Source: Paraphysomonas bandaiensis (Eukaryota > Protista > Chrysophyceae). Taken from it: a stretch of 64,000 bases of DNA. This document shows positions 11,411 through 45,935 of this stretch, piece after piece. The stretch is taken from contig CBFFRP010000150.1 of the NCBI GenBank assembly GCA_965644295.1, positions 434,001-498,000 on the forward strand, in the 5' to 3' direction. How positions within the stretch are numbered: the first letter of the stretch is position 1; each line of letters starts with the position of its first letter. Below the pieces are notes generated by a model. It saw only the letters and a program-made list of their open reading frames with translations, did no database searches and had not been told where the DNA came from. Both the position numbers and the translations under genes were made by a program.

Positions 11411-11499
11411 CCCTCAAAACAAAGTCTGACTGGCACCTTTTCGTGGTGTTCTGGGGGGATAAGTACCGGAGATATTTCCCCGGGAAACTAACGTGAGCC
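11411..11499 (+). ncRNA. Putative HDV-like ribozyme (copy 1)
   Basis: P3-L3 ACC-UUUUCGU-GGU, P1' GUUCUGG(GGG) complementary to the element 5' end CCCUCAAAAC, P4 hairpin ccgg...ccgg, J4/2 CUAA; P2 partly degenerate. Confidence 0.5.
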
Positions 11500-11934
11500 G
11501 CAAACATAGTCAGCAGATATTATTTTGCCCACTCATAGCCGAATGCTTGTGTGGTACAAGGTACATAGGACACCAATAAGTGTCACTTGTGTACACACCT
11601 TTGGTCATTGACTAGTAAACAGGCATCCGGATATGGGCCCACCTCAAGGGCATCCGGGACAGGGCCCACCTGAAGGGTAACCGGGGTATTGGGCTGCCTG
11701 CTGAAGTCAAGCATCCGGGATGTTCACTTTACGGACTCAAAAAGCCTTAAGTTAGAGGCGGTTGCACCTTGGTGCTTGCGGCGACGCACATGCAGCTTTC
11801 GTAGCGTTAAATCGTAGGATAAAAAAAGTGTGTACTGGTTAGTTACAAGTAGAGGTCTAACTAGTTTGTCTAGCGTTCATCTAGCTACTAAATTGGTGCA
11901 GGTTTCTAATGCCTATTGCTAATAATATATATAT

Positions 11935-12390
11935 ATTGAATGTCTGATTATTTAGCAATAGGCGTTGAAAGCCTGCACCAATTAGTGGCTAGAAGAATGC
12001 TAGTCATACTAGTTAGACTACTACCCGTAACTAATCAATACAAACTCTTTTATCCTACTATTTAACGCTACAGAAGCTGCTTGTGCGTCGCCGCAAGCAC
12101 CAAGGTGCAACCACTTCCGTTCTTAGTGTGTGTTATGAGGCTCGCCATGATCGTGTGTCCTGGGACTCACCGGCGCGTGTGATCTGGAGGTCTCCTCTTG
12201 GGATGAGACTCCACTCGCTATATGATAGATAGCCTTATGTACCTCACGGGGACTGACTTATTAGCCTTATGGCAGTTAGAGGAAACAGTAATATGCCCTT
12301 CTGAGATTGGCGATCTGGTGGCCTTCCTTTAGGCATTGTTCCAAGTGGCTAGGAGGTATGTGGATGAAGGTCTTGCAAAAGGTTATGGCC
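11935..12390 (-). mobile_element. 5'-truncated LINE 3' fragment nested, inverted, in the tail of the 11411 element
   Basis: Reverse complement matches 31245-31550 (gccatgatcgtgtgtcc..ggactcac..cgcgtgt) and the shared tail. Confidence 0.8.
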
Positions 12391-23342: not shown

Positions 23343-23356
23343 AAAAACGACAAAAA
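23343..23356 (-). terminator. Pol III oligo-T terminators of the 5S gene
   Basis: Two T5 runs on the minus strand directly after the 5S 3' end. Confidence 0.75.
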
Positions 23357-23474
23357 CGGACAGTACCCGGACTTCGCACGTGGTCACCCACCGTACTACT
23401 AACCGGGCCAGATGCAACTTAACTTCCGCGAGCGGAACGAGAGCGGGTGCGGTTTGCATTGTATGACCGTCCAT
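23356..23474 (-). rRNA. 5S rRNA gene (single dispersed copy)
   Basis: AUGGACGGUCAUAC...GAAGUUAAG...UUAGUAGUACGGUGGGUGACCACGUGCGAAGUCC...CUGUCCGU; ends base-pair; ~119 nt. Confidence 0.95.
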
Positions 23475-23786: not shown

Positions 23787-24542
23787 CAGGGCCTGGTAAC
23801 CGTTAATAGTAATGGCATTAATGGTCATTAATGGGCTATTAATGGTAATGTCATCATAATTGCCGGGAACTAGACTACCGTTAATGGCATGTACTGGTAC
23901 TTGATATATGCTACAGTATATAGAACTAAGTGAAATTTAAACAATGTTAAACAATGTTCATGCAACTCTACAGCTACTTTGTGGCAACTTTGCTCTATAT
24001 AGCGGCAAACTTATTGCTAAAAGAGTTGGAAAATAGTTTCCTGAGCAACAACATAACAACGCACTCTGAAAAAGTTTTGAAAATATCATATTTTACCTAG
24101 AAAACATGTATAAATGAGTATTTTACTGAACGAGAAAACTTCCATTCCTTTATACTTTATATCCAAGCACAATCGAATGTTGTTGTTGAGAGGCTCTGTA
24201 GTCGTGCAAAGTTTATTAAGACACCTGAATCCTTATCATCTAGAATCGTCCCTATTCCTACGAGCCAATTACATGTTGTGGGATGCATATGCCCTCCATT
24301 AAGTCCTGCAAGAATAGTATCCTGATGTACTAGTGGAGAGCGAGAAGTAGTTACGATTCTTAGTCTGTTAGTTAACTAAGGAGCACCACACTATCCATTA
24401 TGAGCGGTATTATCTACTTAGGTATTAATGGCAATTAATGGGCCAATATAAATTTCGGGACATTTTTCATTAACGCTATTTTAATAACCAGGCTGGACGG
24501 CTGGACTACCATTACTGGGCCCTTAATGGTTCCCAGGTCATA
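23787..24542. mobile_element. Degenerate non-autonomous hAT-like element
   Basis: cagggcctggtaaccgttaa at left vs ttaatggttcccaggtc at right; subterminal taatgg repeats at both ends; no clear TSD. Confidence 0.55.
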
Positions 24543-24566
24543 CTTCATGCTTTATAGGGTAAGATG

Positions 24567-24653
24567 CCCTCAACAAAGTCGGGCTCGCAACTCTTCGTGG
24601 TGTTCTGGGGGGATAAGTACAGGAGATATTTCTCCGGGAAACTAATGTGAGCC
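24567..24653 (+). ncRNA. Putative HDV-like ribozyme (copy 2, best P2)
   Basis: P2 GGCUCGCA/UGUGAGCC, L3 UCUUCGU, P1' GUUCUGG + GG, P4 ggaga-uauu-ucucc, J4/2 CUAA with candidate catalytic C at 24642. Confidence 0.55.
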
Positions 24654-25130
24654 ACTCATGATAGCCGAATGCTTGTGTGGTACAAGGTACATAGGACACC
24701 AATAAGTGTCACATGTGTAGATATCTTTGGGCCTTGACTAATAAAAAAGGCATCCGGATATGGGCCCACCTCAAGAGCATCCGGGACAGGGCCCACCTGA
24801 AGGGTAACCGGGGTATTGGGCTGCCTGCTGAAGTCAAGCATCCGGGATGTTCACTTTACGGACTCAAAAAGCCTTAAGTTAGAGGCGGTTGCACCTTGGT
24901 GCTTGCGGCGACGCACAAGCAGCTTTCGCAGCGTAAAATAGTAGGAGAATAAAGTTTGTACTAGTTAGTTACAGGTAGACGTCTATCTAGCTTGACTAGT
25001 TATTTCTAGCTACTCAACTGGTGCTTGTTGAGTTCTGCAATATGATGTGATATATGCTAACAATTGGTGAATGTCCAATGCTAACAGTGCTGATTCATAA
25101 TGCCTATTGCTAATAATAAGACTTTCAATA
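24567..25130 (+). mobile_element. Non-autonomous retroposon (ribozyme-headed SINE/SIDE-like), copy 2
   Basis: TSD atagggtaagatg (24554-24566) / atagggtaaggtg (25135-25147); same 5' start ccctcaacaaagtc and 3' end ataagactttcaata as copy 1. Confidence 0.85.
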
Positions 25131-25379
25131 GGGAATAGGGTAAGGTGGCTTGGATAGGGGGTACCAACATTGAATTTCCTCAATATTAAAGCTTTCTGAT
25201 TTTTTTGTATATATATCGGCTCTATCTCTTACTAAAACTACAACGGAAAAGTACACTATACCTTGTGAATTCGTATATCATACAAAATGAAAAAAGAAAA
25301 TAAACAGAGGCTATATATGACATATCATGTCAACCTAACATAGCTCTCTACACAAACATCCTACCAGTCGTGTACTCTT

Positions 25380-35033: not shown

Positions 35034-38000
35034 ATGGATCTTATTCGCGTCAATAGCAATATGGATACTACCTCATCTGATCTAGGATCATACGATACAT
35101 TTGAGTGCACGGGATCAGGCTCGAATCGATCGTGTTCCTTCACGACAGAAAGCTTAAATGATTACATGGAGGTATATACATCTCATCATGCTTTTAGTTA
35201 TGTATATTGTAACAGTCTTGTCTAATCAGGGTGTTGCTTTCTATGGAATTTTGAATATAATAGCTCTAGTTGTTCTTGTACTATTTGTATTTGGTTATTT
35301 TGTTTACTTTGTGGTGATACTGGTCTTGAAAAGGAAGGCGGGACGGGATGAGAAACACCGACACGATAGTTCCCCACTGCTTAAAACATCCCAGACTACC
35401 AAATCTCGTCTACGCACCATTCGCACAGGAATGCTGATTTTCTCCTTGTGCAGTATTTTTACGCTTTTTATGCTCAACACATTTCTGGGAAACTATGGTC
35501 TGTCTGAAGGCAGTTATACTGTGGTGGAAGCTGGAGATGGAGCTCAGCACGTAATTGAAGGTATGGAAGCCTCTACCACCGGATTCACTCAACGGACTGG
35601 CTACTCTGTTATTTCTCCGTTTCTTGCTACATCAAACTACACCATTAACGAAGCAACAGATTTGCCCAGATCTCTTGGGAGCTTCAAGCGCATCAACGAG
35701 ACTTTACCGGATTTACCAGATGCGACTGCATTCCTATCACATGTCATCCACATCCTGCATCGTGCGGACAACATAACCCAGTACACAGTGAGTGTGATGT
35801 CGAAGACTCACACCTTTTTGTGGCTGGAGAAACGTGTGTATTCTTTACACTCTGATCTACAGTCTGATATAAATGATCACTTAGACCCCTTACTGCAGCG
35901 CATGTATTCAACTCTCGACTCTATAAACAACACTTATACAGAGTTTCGACAACAGGTGGTGGCGTTAGTGGGTGATGGTCACACTGGAGGTTCAATTCGG
36001 AAAGCTCATACTGCATTGGCGGACGTTCAGCGAGCACCTGAGGGTTCACTTCCCAGTGTCAGAACTTTCAAGGATGCAGCATCCGGTTCATACGGGACAG
36101 TGTCACGCATGCAGGCGGGTAAAATGGATGGCGAGCCAGAGGAGGTGGAGTTGTTAACGGGTCGATTAACAGCAATCCATCGCAATATTAGTAGATTGCC
36201 AGATATGGCTGCCCTCGCCGAAAGTGTGTTGGAGATAAATGCGACAGTAGCGGATATACGAAGCCGGGACGGTCTATTGAATCGTTTGCGAGAAACGGTG
36301 CGCAATTTCCAGCAACAGATAGCCAATATTCCGCCGATATCAGTAGTATCTGATCGCGTAGACGACATCCTCGATATTATTCATGTTATACTAGAACAGG
36401 CCGACGACGTAGTTACTATATTAAAGGATTACTTACAACTCTTTAACGGAGTTCCCGACGACATCGAGAAGCTGGCTGGATTTCTGGACGAATTGGGTAC
36501 TGCAAAGCGCTTGCTCCCCCACATAGGAGTTATCGTCTCACAATTGGATGGAATAAATCATACTATTATGGAGTTGCCTGGTGGTCTTGCACACGTTTCG
36601 AACAACTTCGTTAAATTCAATAAGAGCGCCACGACACTGCTGGATGACAGGTATGGCACGGTTGCGAAACTTAACGAACTCAATTCCACCTGTGCGCGGT
36701 ACTTGAGTGTGGGAAATGCCTCCATAGCTCCTATGACTGATGCTCTACAGGATCTAAATGATACCATTCATGACTATGACCTACGGGAAATTGTTTCGCA
36801 GTTAAATGATACTGTGAATAGTCTCAGATCTATTAGATTCAATCAGACTCTGCAATTCATTGATGCCGTAGATGACAAACTGTCCGCTATGGACTTGTCA
36901 GAAGACACAATAGACTGGTTATATTATTGTCACGACAAGATCCAGCTGGTGTCGAGATATTTGGGCCGTACTGTGGACCCCACTGAAGGTGGCAAGTCGG
37001 GGAACTCAGCCGGGGATTATATACTTCTCTCGCAGGGGTACTGTGACAACGACGACAGTGTGTATTGCAAGGACGACAATGATTGTACCGGGGACGGAGT
37101 CTGTACACGGAAAGGCAAGTATCGGTGTGCTAAGGAAGGGAAAAAGTCCTGTACCTCGGACACACAATGCCAAAGATATTGCTTGGCAGACTCTGTAGTT
37201 TCCACAAATATTTTGGGAGGTCTTCAGGCATTTACCACATCGAAATCAAGTATCGATATGGGACCAGTTTTGGAACCCCTTGAAACAGTCATGGAGATAG
37301 GAGACATGGACTTCCAAACACAGGAAGACAGGTTTCATCGAGCTCACGACTATGTGTACAGCATTAATACTACAAGTTTAAAACAAGCTTTGCATCGCAT
37401 CAAGGATTTAATGGATAAAATAAATATCACTGAACAAGTTCAATATATTGAGGATGCAAGGGAAGAAATATCGGAGGCTGATATTCCGTCCTATATCGAT
37501 GTGCTGGAAAAGTACCGTTCTCGGACGGGAGAAATGAAAGACAGAGTAGCTGATATTCTAGCTGATGCAATTAAAAAATTTGAGGCACTCAATTTTTTCC
37601 TTTTTTCAAACTCACAGCTATCTCAAAGGATTAGAAGCTTGTCCCGCTCTTCGTTAGCGACCAAGCTGAAGGCCTCGGGGCCTTATGACATGATAGTCTA
37701 TATGGCACAACAAATGGATTACATGTCACTGTACTTTCACAACTCGGAGGCAGACTTCGCTGTTCCACTCAGTAATTATTCCGATATGATACCTGGACAG
37801 GTACATCTCTTGGACAAGGCCGGTTCGTATGAAGGATCAGGCTACTACGAAAATAATAAACACGGATCATTATTCTACCTGATGAAACTTTTCAAACCCG
37901 CTACATTGGTTGACGTTGATAACCCACTTGCGCGGGGTGTATTTGTGGATTCCCATGGCGATACTTATGCCAACAACACCTATTGTCTCTCCTCGAGCTG

Positions 38001-39612
38001 CATTGAGCACACTGTGAACGTGTTAAACTCTGAGCCCTTGAGTAATTGGAACACCGAGCTTCCAGTGTATGTGTCTGCTGCAGATGGGCCTGTGCTTAGT
38101 GACACCAGTAGAGAAACACTACTATTGCTGCTGTGGATACCCGTGCTATGTTTGCTTCCGATAGGAGGTACGTTGGCAGTTGTGGGATATGCCCCTAAAG
38201 TTAGCAGGCTAGCAAAGCTCCGGTTGTCGCGTTGCTTTACTGGTTGCGTGTCTTGTCATATACCTGTTATTCTTATTCTGACAGCTATTGTATTCCCCCT
38301 GGTAGTTATGGTAAACGATACGTGTTCGACCTGGTCTGGAGTTGGTGACACGTATATCACGACTTACGGCGACGATTTTTGTAGCAATCAGTTTTCAGGT
38401 GTTGGAACTTTGAGAGATTGTAGGTTCAATGTCTCTGTACCACAAGTAGCCGGAGGAGGTGATATCTCTGTTTCATTGGATATTTTGGCAATGTATCGAG
38501 GAATATTTTCGCACGACTGCGATTCGAATCCAGATGCCGTTGCAAATGTTGTGCGGTCCCTTGCAGTTCAGGTTCAAGACATTCCTACAAATGCAGCTAA
38601 CGAGTTTATATCGACCACCCTAAGTGATTATACACTTCGGCCAGGCTCGATGACTGTAATAAACTCGACAACTGAAAATACGGGTGCTGCACTGAAATCT
38701 TTTTTAATGGCATCCAGTGCAAATAGCTTGAATTGTGAAGCTCTATCCAGTGTTATAAGCGATGTTGAGTATGTGACTTGCGACTCTATTGTGGAGCCTA
38801 TTCTGTGGATAGTTGGTACATGGTATCTCTGCGCGTGGGTATTAGTATGTTGCGCTCTCCCTGCTGGGTGTGGATATTCCTGGGAGTATAGTACAAAGCA
38901 GAAGTGGGCTGCCAGGAAGACTTCGAGAGCGGCGGACTCGGATTCGAGTCACTCTGATATGGATGATACGCGTAGTAGTGGCTCTCAAGTCGGAAGTGAT
39001 TCGTCTTCTGTTTCAAATGAGCGGACTCGATCTGATGCTGGTGTACTATCGAGAATTAGTAAAAATTATCGATCGCTCTCAGAAGTAATACTTGGTTGTG
39101 AGTATGCTGTGATGAGAGGTCACAATGAAGAGGCCTGTTCTGATAACAAGGAGGTAGAGATGGCACAATACGATACGGATGAAGAAGGGACCATGTTAGG
39201 AAGTGGAACAGATATATCAAGTAACACTGATGGAGATAATGATAATGGGTTGTTGTCTCGATTGAGCACCAAATTGCATGGAGTCGTTGGGTTATTGAGT
39301 GGGGATGTTTCGGCTATGCTTGGCCGCTCCATGTCACATGACAATGAGAGTCGGGGCTCAGAAGTTAATGCAGATGAAACAACACAAAGTAACAATGGTT
39401 TTGACAATTCTGATGAGTGTGTCTCCGTGGATAACGGGAGACTGTCTCGTTTGAGCAGTAGGCTAAAGGGGGTTGCGAATATGTTTAGAGGAGATTATAC
39501 TGATTTTAACGATGATGATGATGATAATGTCGTTACACACCAGGAATGGGTTGATCCCGTATCAGACAGAGGACAACAGAGGGATCATCATACGCTTGAT
39601 AGTAAAGTCTAG
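35034..39612 (+). CDS. Large multi-pass membrane protein with prominin/tweety-like topology
   Basis: Exon 35034-35171 spliced to 35230; two TM segments, ~900-aa helical N-glycosylated loop with Cys-rich insert, further TMs with NDTC motif, acidic repetitive tail. Confidence 0.65.
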
Positions 39613-40112: not shown

Positions 40113-40412
40113 CCTCAACAAAGTCAACTCGCACTTTTTCGTGGTGTTCTGGGTTCTGGGGGATAAGTACCGGAGATATTTCTGCATATATAATGAGCAG
40201 ATGAGCAGATAATTTCTGCCTAATAGCCGAATAATTGTGTGGTACAAGGTACATGGGACACTAATATAAGTGTCACTTGTGTAGACTGATGACTGACGAA
40301 TAAACATGCACCTGTGATCTGTGACAGGGCCCACCTCAAGGACATCCGGGGTATTGGGCTGTCTGCTGAAGTTAAGCATCCGGGCTGTTCACCTTCTTAA
40401 GGACTCAAAAAT
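40113..40412 (+). mobile_element. 3'-truncated, diverged copy 3 of the ribozyme-headed retroposon
   Basis: Starts cctcaacaaagtc; aligns to 24568-24870 with one internal repeat unit missing; CUAA lost. Confidence 0.8.
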
Positions 40413-40895
40413 CTTGAAATCAGCAGATGTCAGGTATATCAACTAATCATAAGACATGCACTACTACTACGACTACATCATATCATTTTAATGTGACACA
40501 AGTAATATGACCTTGTACTAAAATGTTTTAATTTTCCTTCGTTACTACGTGTTATAAAAATCTTTTTTTTATTGAAACGACTATAGAGGAAAGTCAGGAA
40601 GTTCATTGTACATGCTCAAGCGTGTTGAAAACTAAGCGCTCTTCCATTTTCTAGTAGGGGTAACAAGTGTGTTTTGTGCTCTAACCATTCAAAAACCAAA
40701 ATTGCAGGAATGAGCGAACATGCATATTGCCGTGAAATGAGCTTGCTACATCACTATTATAGCCTAGGAGGTATAGCGGTTGTCGGAGGAAGTGTGCGTC
40801 CTTTAAGTCTCAAAATTAATTAGTATAGTTAAGGCTACGTACGATCGTACAATCAACATTACGAACCTGAAATCAATACAATCATACACAGTACT

Positions 40896-43800
40896 TTACG
40901 CTCCATCTCTAAACGATACAGGGTCTGGAAAATGCATATTATCGTCAATACCTTTTCTGCGTTGTTCACTGATCATTTCAGAGCCAGCTTGGACCCATTG
41001 ACTCTCCGGATGAACACGAGAAGCCCCGACAGGGACATAGCCTTTCACTTTAGGTTTAAATGATGAAGGTAAAACAGACACTTCAGAGACCATATCTTTA
41101 CAATCATCTACTACAGGCTGTTTAGTGGTACCTAACGGTGTATAAGTACCCGCTGTTGATGTTTTAATAATTCTCTTAGGTTTAGATATCGATGCCGATA
41201 TATCTTCGCCAAGTGCCATCTTTCCATTCCTCCTCAGTAGAGGAAGTTCTAACTTCTTTACTACCTGCTGGACAGTCTCAGGATTTCCATATACTAATAT
41301 TCTATCATCTCCGTTGACAATGGTGTCCACTGGTGGATTGGTAAACACATATGGCAGAATAGCTTCGTTCCGAGGTAAAGGGGTTCTGTAAAGAGCAAGG
41401 GGGAGTAGCTGATAAACAACAAGTATTAGCATGAATTCAACAACTCGTGCGTTGATAAACTTACACATCTGGAGTTCAGTGCCCGAAATAGATCACCGTA
41501 TTTTCTCCCAAAAAAAGTGTTAGGGACGGTAACATGGAGTAACATCTGCATATCTTGACCGCATACAAGTTTTTCACACAGTTGGGGTGTAATAGTTCCA
41601 AAAAAACTCTGAAAAAACTCATTAGGCAGTACATTCCATTGCTAAGTTCATACCTGGCATAGCATAGAATCAAAAGACGAAGGTACAATTGCTCTGCCAG
41701 CAGCAAATATTGGCAAGACATGATGAGAATCATCGACGTCCCAATAGTTGCCATTCTGAGTCTACACCAAAATCATAATGAGCTTAACATCTGAGGTGAG
41801 GATAAACCTATACCTTCTTTTGTTCTTTCTTTGTGCTAACAACAGGGGTATGACTACGGACCATAGATGTCTTCGACTTTTGTCCGCTGCTATTTTGTTG
41901 AGGCCCTACAGACAGACGCCGCATTGCTGCACTTTGCCTCCGCCTACTAAACTTTCCCGCGGTTAGTTGGATACATTCTTTGTGTTGGTCCAATACTGCT
42001 TCAGTCTTCATGTGACCAAGAAGAACATCAACGTCGATACTATTTCTGAACTTGTAGTTTCCTTTCAAACACGATGCAAGTCCGGTTCCTGTATCGCCCC
42101 AAAGCGGCCCACGACTTGTAACGTCGCGTTCAAGTTTACTCCGCCGTACAATTGCAGAGTTTAGAACCCCCATATTGTTCGGGCATGATAGTTCGACAGT
42201 AAAAAAGACGTCCCGAGGCACAAATCTCTCGACCTTAAGGTACTTAAATATGGCATCCGAGTCCACATTGGAGGTTTCATCCACATTTATTCGCTCCCTC
42301 GAGGCAAGAAGAACAAGGGCATAAGCTGCCCGCACATTCATCAACGTTAGCTCTTGATTCGACGACACATTACTGTCCAAGAAATACACATCATCGTATC
42401 GGCTCTGAATTTGGCGCCACTTCCTCGGCTCACCAGGATTAACGATTAAGATTGGGTGGTACGCATCGTCAACTACCAGCGGTTTTCTCAACTCACTCAC
42501 AAGTAAAAGTATGTGATCCATACAACCAAAAAATATTATATGGCCTTTGAGATCAGCCGCATCGTAAATTTCTTCAGATGGCGCTCCAAATCTGGGCACG
42601 GATTTCTGAACAGAGTCATTTGAAAACTGAGGCAAAGCGGCATCAAGCGATCCTCTGCGGCTTTGGTTTGCCAGGACGGGCGCAGTCCGCATAACTGCTG
42701 CCACTCTGCGGGCGATTCCGCTTCCAGAAGGGCCAGATTGAGCAGCGGTGCTTTGAATGATTTCTCCTGCGCCAGATTCGCTTCTTCCGAACTTTCTGCT
42801 TGTAGATTTCTTCACGCTCTCACCCCGTTTGTTGTCCTCATCATGAATACTGCTCGTACGTGTAGAAAGAACTCTTCGAAGTTTCCGCTTTTCTTCCTTA
42901 TCTGCTTTAAATTTCGATACCAGCGATGCAATACTCGGGTTCTGAGAACTTAAATCTACGGAGGAGATAACTTCTCCAGAAGGTTGCTCTACCGGTGTCG
43001 ACAAATCTTTTGTTGGGGACGGACTCATGGCGGACTCTGTTTTTAACGCCGCCATTCTCGCCAACATGGCCACATCTTTTACAGACCTCTTACCCTTCCG
43101 CTTGGACATAGAATTTAATCGTGTCTGTTGCAGTGCCGCCACAATACTCGCCGGTTTTGTCGTTGCTGCAATACTTGGGGAGTTCAATGCACCAATCGTA
43201 CTCTGCTGAACTGCTTTTCGCGCAACCATCGCAAATTTTCCTTTGGCTCCATCAACCCCCGTGGTTTGAGCATTAACTGTGCGGACAAGTGCAGCAGCTT
43301 GCTTGAGGGACTTCAGCTTGTTCTTTTTGCTAATCATATTCTTCATGCTCTTCATATTCGTCATTTTCCCTGAGGAAGACTTCATTTGCAGTAGAGCTTT
43401 TTTTGATACACTAGGAATGTCCCGCATATCCCGCAGCTGAGGAGAATTGTTATCATCAAGCAAGTCAAGTGTCTCATCGTTAACACTAACGAAGCAGTCA
43501 GCTGCGTCATCGAGGTCTCGATCTAGTTGTAGCTTGACTGGTGGACTCTGAGATTCCAGTGACAATTCTGATTTCACTGTCGTAGGCTGTGATTGATCGT
43601 CATCAATAGAAAACTTCCTCATGAAATCGCCTCTTATAGAATCTACTTTGATCGTTGAGCTCGGCTTATCAACACTGACCACATTTTTGCAGCTAAAACC
43701 AACAGGATCAATAGGATGCTCAATGTAACCTAGGAAATCATCGTCATTCTCTTCAGACGAGTCAGTATCGAAACCAAATACGCCATTGTCCGCCACCTGG

Positions 43801-45935
43801 TTAAACACAGTGTCGCGCTTGCGTACAATCGCAAAATCACTATCAATTAAGTTTTGGGCCTTCTCCAGGTGCACAATATCTTTCATGTGGCTACTACTGG
43901 TAGATGCAGTGTGGACAACTGGAGCAGAACCTATCGAATCAATATTTCTGTGTCTCCTGACAGCAAACTGCTGCTCGGCGGAGATCATATTCTGCAACAT
44001 GCGGTCTACAAGTACAGAGTCTGTCATTGAATAGCCGATAGCACTGGCGACAGCATTGTTAGGGGCAAGCAGCACCCCGACGTTGAACTTTTCAAAGAAT
44101 GCCGACACTGACTTGAACTTCTTTCGCTCATACTGCCTCGGGTTGTAGTAAAATCCTTGGTCCTCTGAAGAGTATACTCCCACAAAAGTGCACTCGAACT
44201 CAATATATATGGCTTCTACCAAAAGGGACCAAGAAAATCCCAGCATTTGGAAGAAGTTGTGATCGATAGGTACGTAATAAAGCTCCATTCCTACCCCATA
44301 CGTATACTCGGATAGCCAATTGTCCCCAACTTTCTGGGCTGCGTACTTTCCACAGGTGGAGGAAAAACTGTGAAAGAGATTCTCGACGAGTGTCGCCAGG
44401 CCTGGGCATATTGCGTTTCTACACTGCAATGTGGTTTTATATTCGTCTAAACAAAGCACAAGATCCGCGTCACTGTCTTTCAGTAGATCTCGGTCCTGCG
44501 AACGCAACACTTGAACAAGACACTCCAGCCTGGCGTTGAAGTTATTTACAGAAAGGGTCCGCAGTACAGTAGCGGCATCATCCAGTAGAGCGTCTTCCTC
44601 ATCCACCTCCACATTACTCAGAAAGAGCATTCCCGAGGCGATGTCTGCACGGGCCTTCTGCAAATCTTCCATATTCAGTGCAGAACCTATAATATACGAA
44701 ACGCGGCTATCGAATAACGGCGAATGGATAAGGTCTTTCACTTCATCCACCGGCTCGGCGGGGCTCAGTATCACCAGGTGAAACTCCGGCGTGTTAGTCG
44801 CATATCGGTCTGGGTGAAAGAACTCCCGGAATACACGTGAGAGTTTAGATTTGTCATTCACGTGTCCACATAAAATGAGGTGGTTTTCATGTGGGCGGGC
44901 TTCATACGTGGTTCGAAAAGGAGAGTTCATTGAGAGAAGGGTTTGAAGCTTGTTAATCTGCATTGGAATAACTATAAGAGCGGCAATGATTAGCATCAAC
45001 GTCGCTATTCTAGAGGCATTATTTGTGGGATTAAAGTCGCCATATCCCACCACAGATATCGTCACAACTACGAAGTACAGACACTCAAAGAAGGCCAATG
45101 AGCGGCAGCGAATCTTCGATGGCTTATACTGCGTATCCTGCACATCGTGCAGGGCATAACAGTTGTTTTCACGGCAATCACATGTCGGATCATCGAATGA
45201 AGAGAAGTTCGAATCACAAGATGGCTCATACCCAGTTTTCTCATTTATGTACTGACAGTCGTAACTTAACTCATTTACATCGTTCTCTGTCAGATTAATG
45301 ACTCCAGCGGCAAGAAAAGTCAAGCTCAACAATGCAAGTATCAGAGTTATGATTTGTCGCTTTACACCACTAAACCCACCCAATAGACGAAACGTTCGCA
45401 ATATTCTAATAAGGCGCAATATTCTCGCAAACCGGAGCCATGATATGTTCGGAGCCTGTTGAATATATGTTAAATATACAGGGATTATTGTTACGATATC
45501 AATCCAAGCCATGGGAGACTTGAAGAAAGCAATCGTACTGCTCGCAATAAACCAACTGACTATGAAGTCCATAAGAAAGAACTGAGTAATAATGTTCTCA
45601 ATAATTGAATAGATTTGTAGCCAGAGGTATGAATCACGATAACTTTCTGCCACATAAATTGCGCATGCAAGTAGTGAAAGGACAACTTGTAATATATCCC
45701 AATACGTTCCGCCAAGAGAATTATACTTCAGCGATATTAAGTATTTTTTAAATGTACTGATATCATATGACCTGTGCTCAGCACAGAATATTCCCCAACA
45801 ACCCGCTTCTTTATTTAAATCATCGATTGCATGTGCTGACTGTGATTTTACTGAGAGGTAAGCCTCTGATTTCCCCATGTTAGATAGACGAGACTGGTTC
45901 ATACCAGTGTCCGGCACCTGTCTCTTAATAGACAT
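40896..45935 (-). CDS. Calcium-activated BK/Slo-type potassium channel alpha subunit
   Basis: S4 LRFARILRLIRILR, pore TISVVGYGD, RCK1 HLILCG..EFFHP, PGLATLVENL, RCK2 HIIFFG, C-terminal PYVFTNP..DRILV exons. Confidence 0.92.

Follow-up and report, generated by a model that had tools for sequence, protein, structure and literature searches.

A short non-coding retroposon is present in three copies on the + strand of the 64-kb window, a term used throughout for the whole stretch of DNA analyzed (contig CBFFRP010000150.1, positions 434,001 to 498,000). The first 87 nucleotides (nt) of this element, referred to as its head, can be drawn as a self-cleaving ribozyme of the hepatitis delta virus (HDV) family. 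The model for such an arrangement is Pr77, that is, the first 77 nt of the trypanosomatid retrotransposon L1Tc, which act both as an HDV-like ribozyme and as an RNA polymerase (Pol) II promoter and are also found at the head of the non-coding elements NARTc, RIME, and SIDER (PMC3185411, PMC3383444, PMC4035085, PMC4748587). That the head of the present retroposon is an HDV-like ribozyme of this L1Tc/Pr77 type, with or without a promoter role, has in our estimate an even chance of being correct; it is a good candidate for the bench, not a demonstrated ribozyme. The initial annotation thereby holds in part, both in what it observed and in how this was interpreted.

The retroposon is approximately 510 bp long, is devoid of coding capacity, and is dispersed in hundreds to about 2,000 copies over a genome of 62.5 Mb (669 contigs). 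A genome search with the copy at window position 24567 as the query returned thousands of first-look candidates, and nearly all scored copies start at the same base. The 17-nt core of the head, TTCGTGGTGTTCTGGGG, has 602 exact matches in the genome and none when the reversed sequence is used as a control, while the first 92 nt are identical in more than 30 copies. In 30 copies fetched together with their flanks, the 5' end is constant, reading CCCTCAAC or CCCTCAACAAAGTCGG, and the 3' end is ...GCCTATTGCTAAATAAAAGACTTTCAATAT, without poly(A). The start lies within one base of the common point in 29 of the 30, in agreement with the initial annotation, in which a non-autonomous retroposon of constant 5' end was assumed; a random distribution of 5' ends is not observed. 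An exact direct repeat of 8-15 nt adjoins the first base and is found again just past the 3' tail in 19 of these copies, with zero offset in 17. Fixed 5' end and abutting duplications together imply a retroposon whose RNA begins exactly at C1. Dispersed copies, target-site duplications, lack of coding capacity, and a 3' end in common with a long interspersed nuclear element (LINE) place it among the LINE-dependent non-autonomous retroposons, that is, the short interspersed nuclear elements (SINEs) or short internally deleted elements (SIDEs). The motif AATAAA is located about 15 nt before the 3' end (nt 492-497 of the main-family element, e.g., L010:1992-1997), and the retroposon RNA may be polyadenylated while the LINE reverse transcriptase starts inside the tail. 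The young main family is about 80% identical to the copies of the window, which are therefore assigned to an older subfamily. Within the body, at nt ~205-330 (24745-24850 of the window in the old copy), an internal direct repeat, GCATCCGG..GGGCCCACCT(C/G)AAGG, occurs two to three times.

Over its last ~190 nt, the retroposon matches the 3' end of a LINE with SET, endonuclease, and reverse transcriptase modules at approximately 90% identity. The large open reading frame (ORF) of this partner LINE contains the domains SET, Exo_endo_phos, and RVT_1 and encodes 2,823 residues in a truncated copy and 3,175 residues in an ENA contig. Taken over the available copies and relatives, the LINE is unusually large, with a size of at least 11 kb; its ORF1 encodes about 350-480 residues and its ORF2 2,800-3,400 residues, with SET preceding the APE endonuclease and the reverse transcriptase (L051:335-8803, - strand, G000:C433; L067, L069-L071). 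Relatives of identical SET, APE, and reverse transcriptase architecture and 33-35% amino-acid identity are found in contigs from ENA, JGI, and Logan. We know of no described LINE with a SET domain. Two families of the LINE, about 70% identical to each other, coexist in the genome, with copies at C132:274000, C42:103477, and C152:221420 (family A) and at C78:15289 and C363:321457 (family B). From the first copy found, the element continues upstream for 2.5 kb or more. In the examined part of the LINE, no match to the first ~320 nt of the retroposon was obtained; likewise, the ENA contig (L067), which starts inside the element, has no similarity to the SINE except for the tail, and, among the matches listed for contigs C42 and C78, none of the exact head core precedes a LINE copy. 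Metagenome scans for the LINE ORF1 and for the head core gave no matches.

In the family consensus of the head, the possible helices follow the order of the HDV family, P1-J1/2-P2-P3-L3-P3'-P1'-P1.1-P4-J4/2-P2', corresponding to a nested double pseudoknot, and the pairing of P1 begins at nt 1, the very base that is set independently by the target-site duplications. P1 would be formed by C1-A6 with U40-G45 (6 bp, one G·U) and be followed by J1/2 (nt 7-14); P2 would comprise G15, G16, and C18-C22 paired with G81-C87 (7 bp, A17 bulged) and P3 A23-C25 paired with G33-U35 (3 bp). The loop L3 closed by P3, UUUUCGU, is nearly invariant in the family and includes the conserved U and G of the reverse wobble. 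Four unpaired bases, GUUC (nt 36-39), are located between P3' and P1'. The only possible P1.1 pair is U28-A46, which is invariant in 27 distinct copies. Further downstream follow the variable hairpin P4 (C53-G60 with C64-G71) and the nearly invariant J4/2, GAAACUAAC, in which the CUAA(C) motif provides C76, a candidate for the catalytic base, followed by purines. In the initial annotation, the 3' strand of P1 had been seen in GUUCUGG followed by GG. This register does not give continuous pairing with the 5' end and leaves U·U and C·C mismatches in the middle of the helix; it was given up for the 6-bp pairing of CCCUCA with UGGGGG, with the consequence that GUUC is unpaired and no GG is left for P1.1.

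By duplex energy, the consensus helices are comparable to those of active trypanosomatid ribozymes, with -7.7 kcal/mol for P1 (TvSIDER1, -7.3) and -7.2 for P2 (L1Tc, -9.7). RNAfold predicts the P1 helix for the main family. The nested subsets P1+P3+P4 and P2+P3+P4 were calculated at -19.3 and -21.6 kcal/mol, respectively, the latter to be supplemented by about -6 to -8 for P1, compared with a minimum free energy of -25.1. In terms of these calculated values, the pseudoknot is energetically competitive with the nested optimum, not dominant.

The fold was compared with chance by means of a relaxed descriptor, anchored at nt 1 and written after the sequence had been seen. Required were the helices P1 (6 bp or more), P3 (3 bp), and P2 (five pairs, adjoining P3), a single pair in P1.1, and a P4 hairpin, together with an L3 that starts with U and holds the G, a CNRA motif at most 2 nt from P2', and no more than 4 nt separating P3' from P1'. 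This descriptor is passed by the consensus, by 8 of 100,000 dinucleotide shuffles, and by 16 of 37 individual copies. What gives this result weight is less the fold alone than its agreement with a first base that was defined independently.

The second line of evidence is sequence resemblance to ribozymes of proven activity. Pr77 of L1Tc (oligonucleotide R77, PMC1874656) and the active LmSIDER2A and TvSIDER1 (supplement of PMC4035085) served as comparators. Collinear blocks common to the SINE head and the Pr77-type sequences are CCCT at nt 1, CACCT..CGTGGTG in the P3-L3-P3' region, AGTAC after P1', and GGAAnCTAA in J4/2 before P2'. Depending on the gap costs, 3-16 of 2,000 shuffles attained the summed local alignment score, and 4 of 2,000 that of LmSIDER2A alone. 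In the Pr77 type, too, a module of ~77-96 nt starting with CCCT at nt 1 is placed at the head of retroposons, both coding and non-coding. Shared are, furthermore, P3-L3-P3' of the form ACC-UxxxCGU-GGU, AGUAC after P1', GGAAnCUAA in J4/2, a P1.1 of at most a single A-U pair, a proposed cleavage 5' of a C, and CGTG as a possible downstream promoter element. The sequence of P2 differs in all four while pairing in each, and P1 likewise differs between the SINE and the Pr77 members while pairing; if homology is assumed, such changes would be compensatory. Active L1Tc/SIDER ribozymes cut 5' of C1 (PMC4035085), and P1.1 of the L1Tc ribozyme (L1TcRz) is a single pair (PMC3185411). A pyrimidine at +1, which had initially been regarded as a caveat, is accordingly no obstacle, and with the one-pair P1.1 two of the original caveats are removed. 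As CGUGG and CUAA in the shared core occur in HDV-like ribozymes at large, the resemblance to the Pr77 type may reflect function, not descent.

There are also differences from Pr77. In Pr77, a P1' of 7 nt directly follows P3', whereas P1 here has 6 bp and GUUC precedes P1'; with respect to both Pr77 and R2 (PMC3774820), the interval between P3' and P1' is about three bases longer. P1.1 is flipped, A-U in L1TcRz corresponding to U28-A46 here. The CGTG motif is found at +30 to +33 instead of +25 to +28, that is, 5 nt further from the start, and overall the sequence similarity of the SINE head to the Pr77 members is modest. In addition, the host is a marine, apparently non-photosynthetic organism and probably not a kinetoplastid. 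Paraflagellar-rod and light-harvesting genes were not found in searches of which the controls were also silent, so that their absence carries little weight.

The copy on which the annotation was based extends from 24567 to 25134 (+) and consists of the head, a non-coding body, and the LINE-type 3' tail ending in ...GCCTATTGCTAATAATAAGACTTTCAATA; relative to the main family, it has an insertion of ~75 nt near 25025-25100. It is flanked by the target-site duplications ATAGGGTAAGATG (24554-24566) and ATAGGGTAAGGTG (25135-25147), the former matching the latter at 12 of 13 bases. Its head, the candidate HDV-like (Pr77-type) module at 24567-24653 (+), is approximately 90% identical to that of the main family. 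The 5' strand of P1, CCCTCA (24567-24572), with the proposed cleavage 5' of 24567, pairs with TGGGGG (24606-24611), which in the old subfamily is extended by one extra G (to 24612). The 5' strand of P2, GGCTCGCA (24582-24589), forms 8 bp with TGTGAGCC (24646-24653), a helix that is also present in the RNAfold minimum-energy structure of this copy. In between are the P3-L3-P3' region with the CGTG motif (24590-24601), which reads ACT-CTTCGT-GGT compared with ACC-TTTTCGT-GGT in the family consensus; GTTC between P3' and the paired part of P1' (24602-24605), constituting the main departure from the canonical fold; the P4 hairpin CAGGAGA-TATT-TCTCCGG (24620-24637), also predicted by RNAfold; and CTAA of J4/2 (24642-24645), with the candidate catalytic C at 24642, aligning with GGAAGCTAAG of the Pr77-type ribozymes. 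P2, GGAGA-TATT-TCTCC (24622-24635), and CTAA are thus all present in this copy, with the C at 24642 as originally given. In place of the proposed ACC-UYUUCGU-GGU, the 24567 copy has either an A·G mismatch in P3 or a shifted L3 beginning with C.

The three copies share the start (C/A)CCTCAA(AA)CAAAGTC, as had been noticed before. The second one, of the same old subfamily, spans 11411-11930 (+) and has the 5' end CCCTCAAAACAAAG; its tail adjoins an inverted LINE/SINE tail at about 11975-12112, and the tail-to-tail junction (11900-12112) suggests nested or adjacent insertions at one site. The third copy (40113-40420, +) has internal deletions and is 3'-truncated, lacking the 3' strands of P4 and P2. 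In the region of the proposed P1 3' strand it contains a tandem duplication, GTTCTGG-GTTCTGGGGG (40137-40165). The partial degeneration of the copies was rightly stated in the initial annotation: the 24567 copy is old and decayed, the G-run after P1' being one G longer, P3 containing a mismatch, and P4 an A·G mismatch. Both the 24567 and the 11411 copy fail the relaxed descriptor; the HDV-like order of elements from nt 1 is that of the consensus head. The 24567 copy itself is probably inactive.

Among the copies, P1, P2, and P3 barely vary, since copies are near-identical or dead, and are uninformative with regard to the covariation that had been suggested as a check. Between subfamilies, variation with retained pairing is confined to P4, in which positions 55-69 pair as GU, GC, and AU, including one double change. 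At the tip of P4, the main family has gained the pair G60-C64 in comparison with the older subfamilies. The retroposon together with its head is also contained in sequencing runs that bear the names of three other organisms and in poly(A) metatranscriptomes of marine origin; identical P4 variants are found in the former and in one marine metatranscriptome. These runs were examined as assembled contigs, from which starts and ends of RNAs are not readable. In them, hardly any variants are listed for the first 59 nt, apart from one run in which a single base is deleted at nt 26, and internally deleted forms occur with joints skipping 33-271 nt. P4 is known as the variable, dispensable part of HDV-like ribozymes (PMC3774820). 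An unchanging core combined with a P4 that varies yet stays paired is the pattern of an HDV-like ribozyme (PMC3774820), and equally that of any conserved head with a hairpin.

Several results weigh against a ribozyme. With regard to geometry, P1' does not directly follow P3', although a P1' of ~7 nt directly downstream of P3' is a defining rule of the family (PMC3774820); four bases (GUUC) intervene, and otherwise P1 would include the U·U and C·C mismatches, while in other HDV-like ribozymes P1 mismatches abolish activity (PMC3774820). P1.1 has at most one A-U pair, and L3 is without the usual C. The strict descriptor fails, the head passing with a J3/1 of 4 nt and failing at a gap of at most 1 nt. 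The relaxed descriptor, when not anchored, matches ~20 unrelated places in the 64-kb window, and it recovers one of three proven Pr77-type ribozymes, missing two positive controls. In nested folding, energies as good are obtained with shuffled sequences (z = 0, -1.5, 0, 0.5). Among 35 copies (27 distinct), 93.3% of the cells of proposed pairs are paired; shuffling gives 93.0±0.2%, with the observed value attained in 38 of 500 shuffles.

The database and sequence comparisons add to these points. No Rfam ribozyme was matched, either in a gathering-score search of the window or at E≤10 on pieces of 140-350 nt (24450-24800 and a young copy), the curated HDV, CPEB3, and drz families included. The global alignment to L1Tc reaches only z≈2, an nhmmer search with a three-sequence Pr77 profile gave no match, and the CGUGG and CUAA parts of the common core are generic to HDV-like ribozymes. 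Heads of this kind are also missing from what was examined of the 5' region of the partner LINE, short of its true 5' end, in which respect the system again differs from Pr77; the 5' parts of the LINE relatives L069-L071, the ends of which are uncertain, contain neither a head-like motif nor a + strand descriptor match. Finally, contigs from RNA or possibly RNA libraries, including poly(A) RNA-Seq, cross the 5' junction uncleaved and with varied flanks. Such contigs may stem from DNA or from old copies transcribed by read-through, and they neither support nor refute cleavage.

Among other systems, the present head resembles the ribozymes of R2, R4, Dong, RTE, Baggins, and R2-derived SIDEs in its placement at the 5' end of a non-long-terminal-repeat element, where the ribozyme frees the element RNA from a co-transcript (PMC3774820). 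With the R2 type it shares a variable P4, an L3 ending in CGU and followed by GG, and a J4/2 with catalytic C and A (PMC3774820). In contrast, R2 is specific for a site in rDNA, and the cut often falls upstream, within 28S sequence; its P1' abuts P3', its P1.1 normally consists of C-G pairs, and the R2 SIDEs are internal deletions of the LINE that share both LINE ends (PMC3774820). HDV and CPEB3 (Rfam RF00094 and RF00622) are alike in the overall nested double-pseudoknot topology and different in that here a G1·U wobble at the cleavage site is missing, an insertion is present in J3/1, and neither Rfam model matches at E≤10. The CPEB3 L3, UUCACGU, which goes along with a one-pair P1.1, is similar to the 7-nt L3 UUUUCGU. 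Small self-cleaving RNAs on abundant non-autonomous retroelements are also represented by the hammerheads of the Sm-alpha SINEs of schistosomes and of the retrozymes; these belong to another ribozyme class and process multimers or circular RNAs, unlike the LINE-type setting of the 5' end considered here.

A head that serves as an internal Pol II core promoter only, with an initiator at nt 1 and CGTG as a downstream element, would make the HDV-like drawing incidental and dispense with self-cleavage; we regard this as possible, if somewhat doubtful. The 77-nt head of L1Tc, of the same kind, is a Pol II promoter in which CGTG (+25 to +28) is essential, and insect LINEs contain CGTG at about +28 to +32 (PMC4748587, PMC1874656), so that CGTG at +30 to +33 of the SINE is a candidate for a promoter role. 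The whole head is conserved across subfamilies and in the runs of other organisms, including J1/2, which a ribozyme would not need. The non-canonical HDV-like geometry and the blank Rfam result are readily accommodated, and the fixed 5' end is explained equally well. An AATAAA close to the 3' end, occurrence in poly(A) libraries, and the lack of Pol III features fit Pol II transcripts. A mere promoter, however, leaves unexplained why P1-P4 and CUAA should follow the HDV order from nt 1, as 8 of 100,000 shuffles do, and why changes in P4 should preserve pairing. By analogy with L1Tc, the one well-studied precedent, in which promoter and ribozyme coexist, the two readings are not exclusive.

If the 5' end were fixed otherwise, the head could also be a structured 5' RNA module of another role, such as binding of the ORF1 or ORF2 protein, protection of the 5' end, or assistance in second-strand synthesis. 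Stable local helices (P4, -12 kcal/mol, and the stem at the 5' end) and conservation of the head among subfamilies would suit such a module. We consider it unlikely, because no known retroposon uses a module of this kind without promoter or ribozyme, nothing similar is found in the examined 5' parts of the partner LINE, and the resemblance to the Pr77-type catalytic core would be left unexplained. Size, copy number, and the LINE-derived tail would also be in agreement with an ordinary Pol III SINE whose head stems from a small RNA gene diverged past recognition, and a 5S rRNA gene, unrelated in sequence, is found 1.1 kb away (23355-23474). This origin is highly improbable. The initial annotation had excluded a Pol III head, and its view is upheld: ARAGORN detects no tRNA in the window, the head does not match tRNA, 5S, or 7SL of Rfam even at E≤10, no B box is present (four mismatches in the best match), the best A-box match has 2-3 mismatches at the wrong spacing, and Pol III would be expected to stop at the T4 run of nt 26-29.

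Returning to the HDV-like ribozyme of L1Tc/Pr77 type, the following course of events is proposed. Pol II would transcribe the element, which would either be included in longer read-through transcripts or be started from its own head as an internal promoter. In the RNA of active master copies, the first ~87 nt would most likely fold into the HDV-like double pseudoknot with C76 as the general acid, and the ribozyme would cut 5' of C1, so that every RNA and every new copy would start at the same base and retain the head. The same DNA might double as the internal Pol II promoter, as in L1Tc, with CGTG at +30 to +33. Copying of the retroposon is ascribed to the partner LINE, which recognizes the shared, poly(A)-less 3' tail.

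As for the surroundings of the retroposon, the 5S rRNA gene (23355-23474, -; 100.7 bits with Rfam) is complete, stands alone 1.1 kb upstream of the 24567 copy, and is unrelated to the repeat; apart from chance matches, it was the only Rfam match obtained on the window and on old and young heads. Two very long uninterrupted ORFs are located further downstream, one at 35158-39612 (+) encoding a protein of 1,484 residues without Pfam match, and one at 41808-45935 (-) encoding a BK-type potassium channel of 1,375 residues, for which the nearest Atlas cluster consists mostly of oomycetes. This stramenopile-like channel is the only hint at the affinity of the host that the Atlas gave. The genome seems to be intron-poor.

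An HDV-like ribozyme heading a non-autonomous retroposon would in itself be of a known kind, represented by NARTc, RIME, SIDER, and the R2 SIDEs; new would be the host lineage and the atypical P3-P1 junction. If the head cleaves, an abundant short retroposon, with 602 exact head-core matches and many identical heads, would spread without the need of a Pol III promoter. The element would ride any passing transcript and free itself at its own first base. The strategy of L1Tc, NARTc, and SIDER would thereby be extended beyond the trypanosomatids, and the way in which such ribozymes are searched for would be affected by a natural HDV-like variant whose P3-P1 junction is unusual. A more far-reaching version, which we put forward tentatively and hold to be rather doubtful, is that the dual Pr77-type module of HDV-like ribozyme and internal Pol II promoter, known so far only from trypanosomatid L1Tc/ingi, occurs in an unrelated marine heterotrophic eukaryote at the head of a SINE-like chimera of ribozyme head, unrelated body, and LINE tail. 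The module would then replace the Pol III promoter of all classical SINEs, its origin would be very old or its spread horizontal, and the HDV fold would tolerate a 4-nt insertion between P3 and P1. Should the head not cleave, it would become a candidate for an internal Pol II promoter, of which none is known in this lineage.

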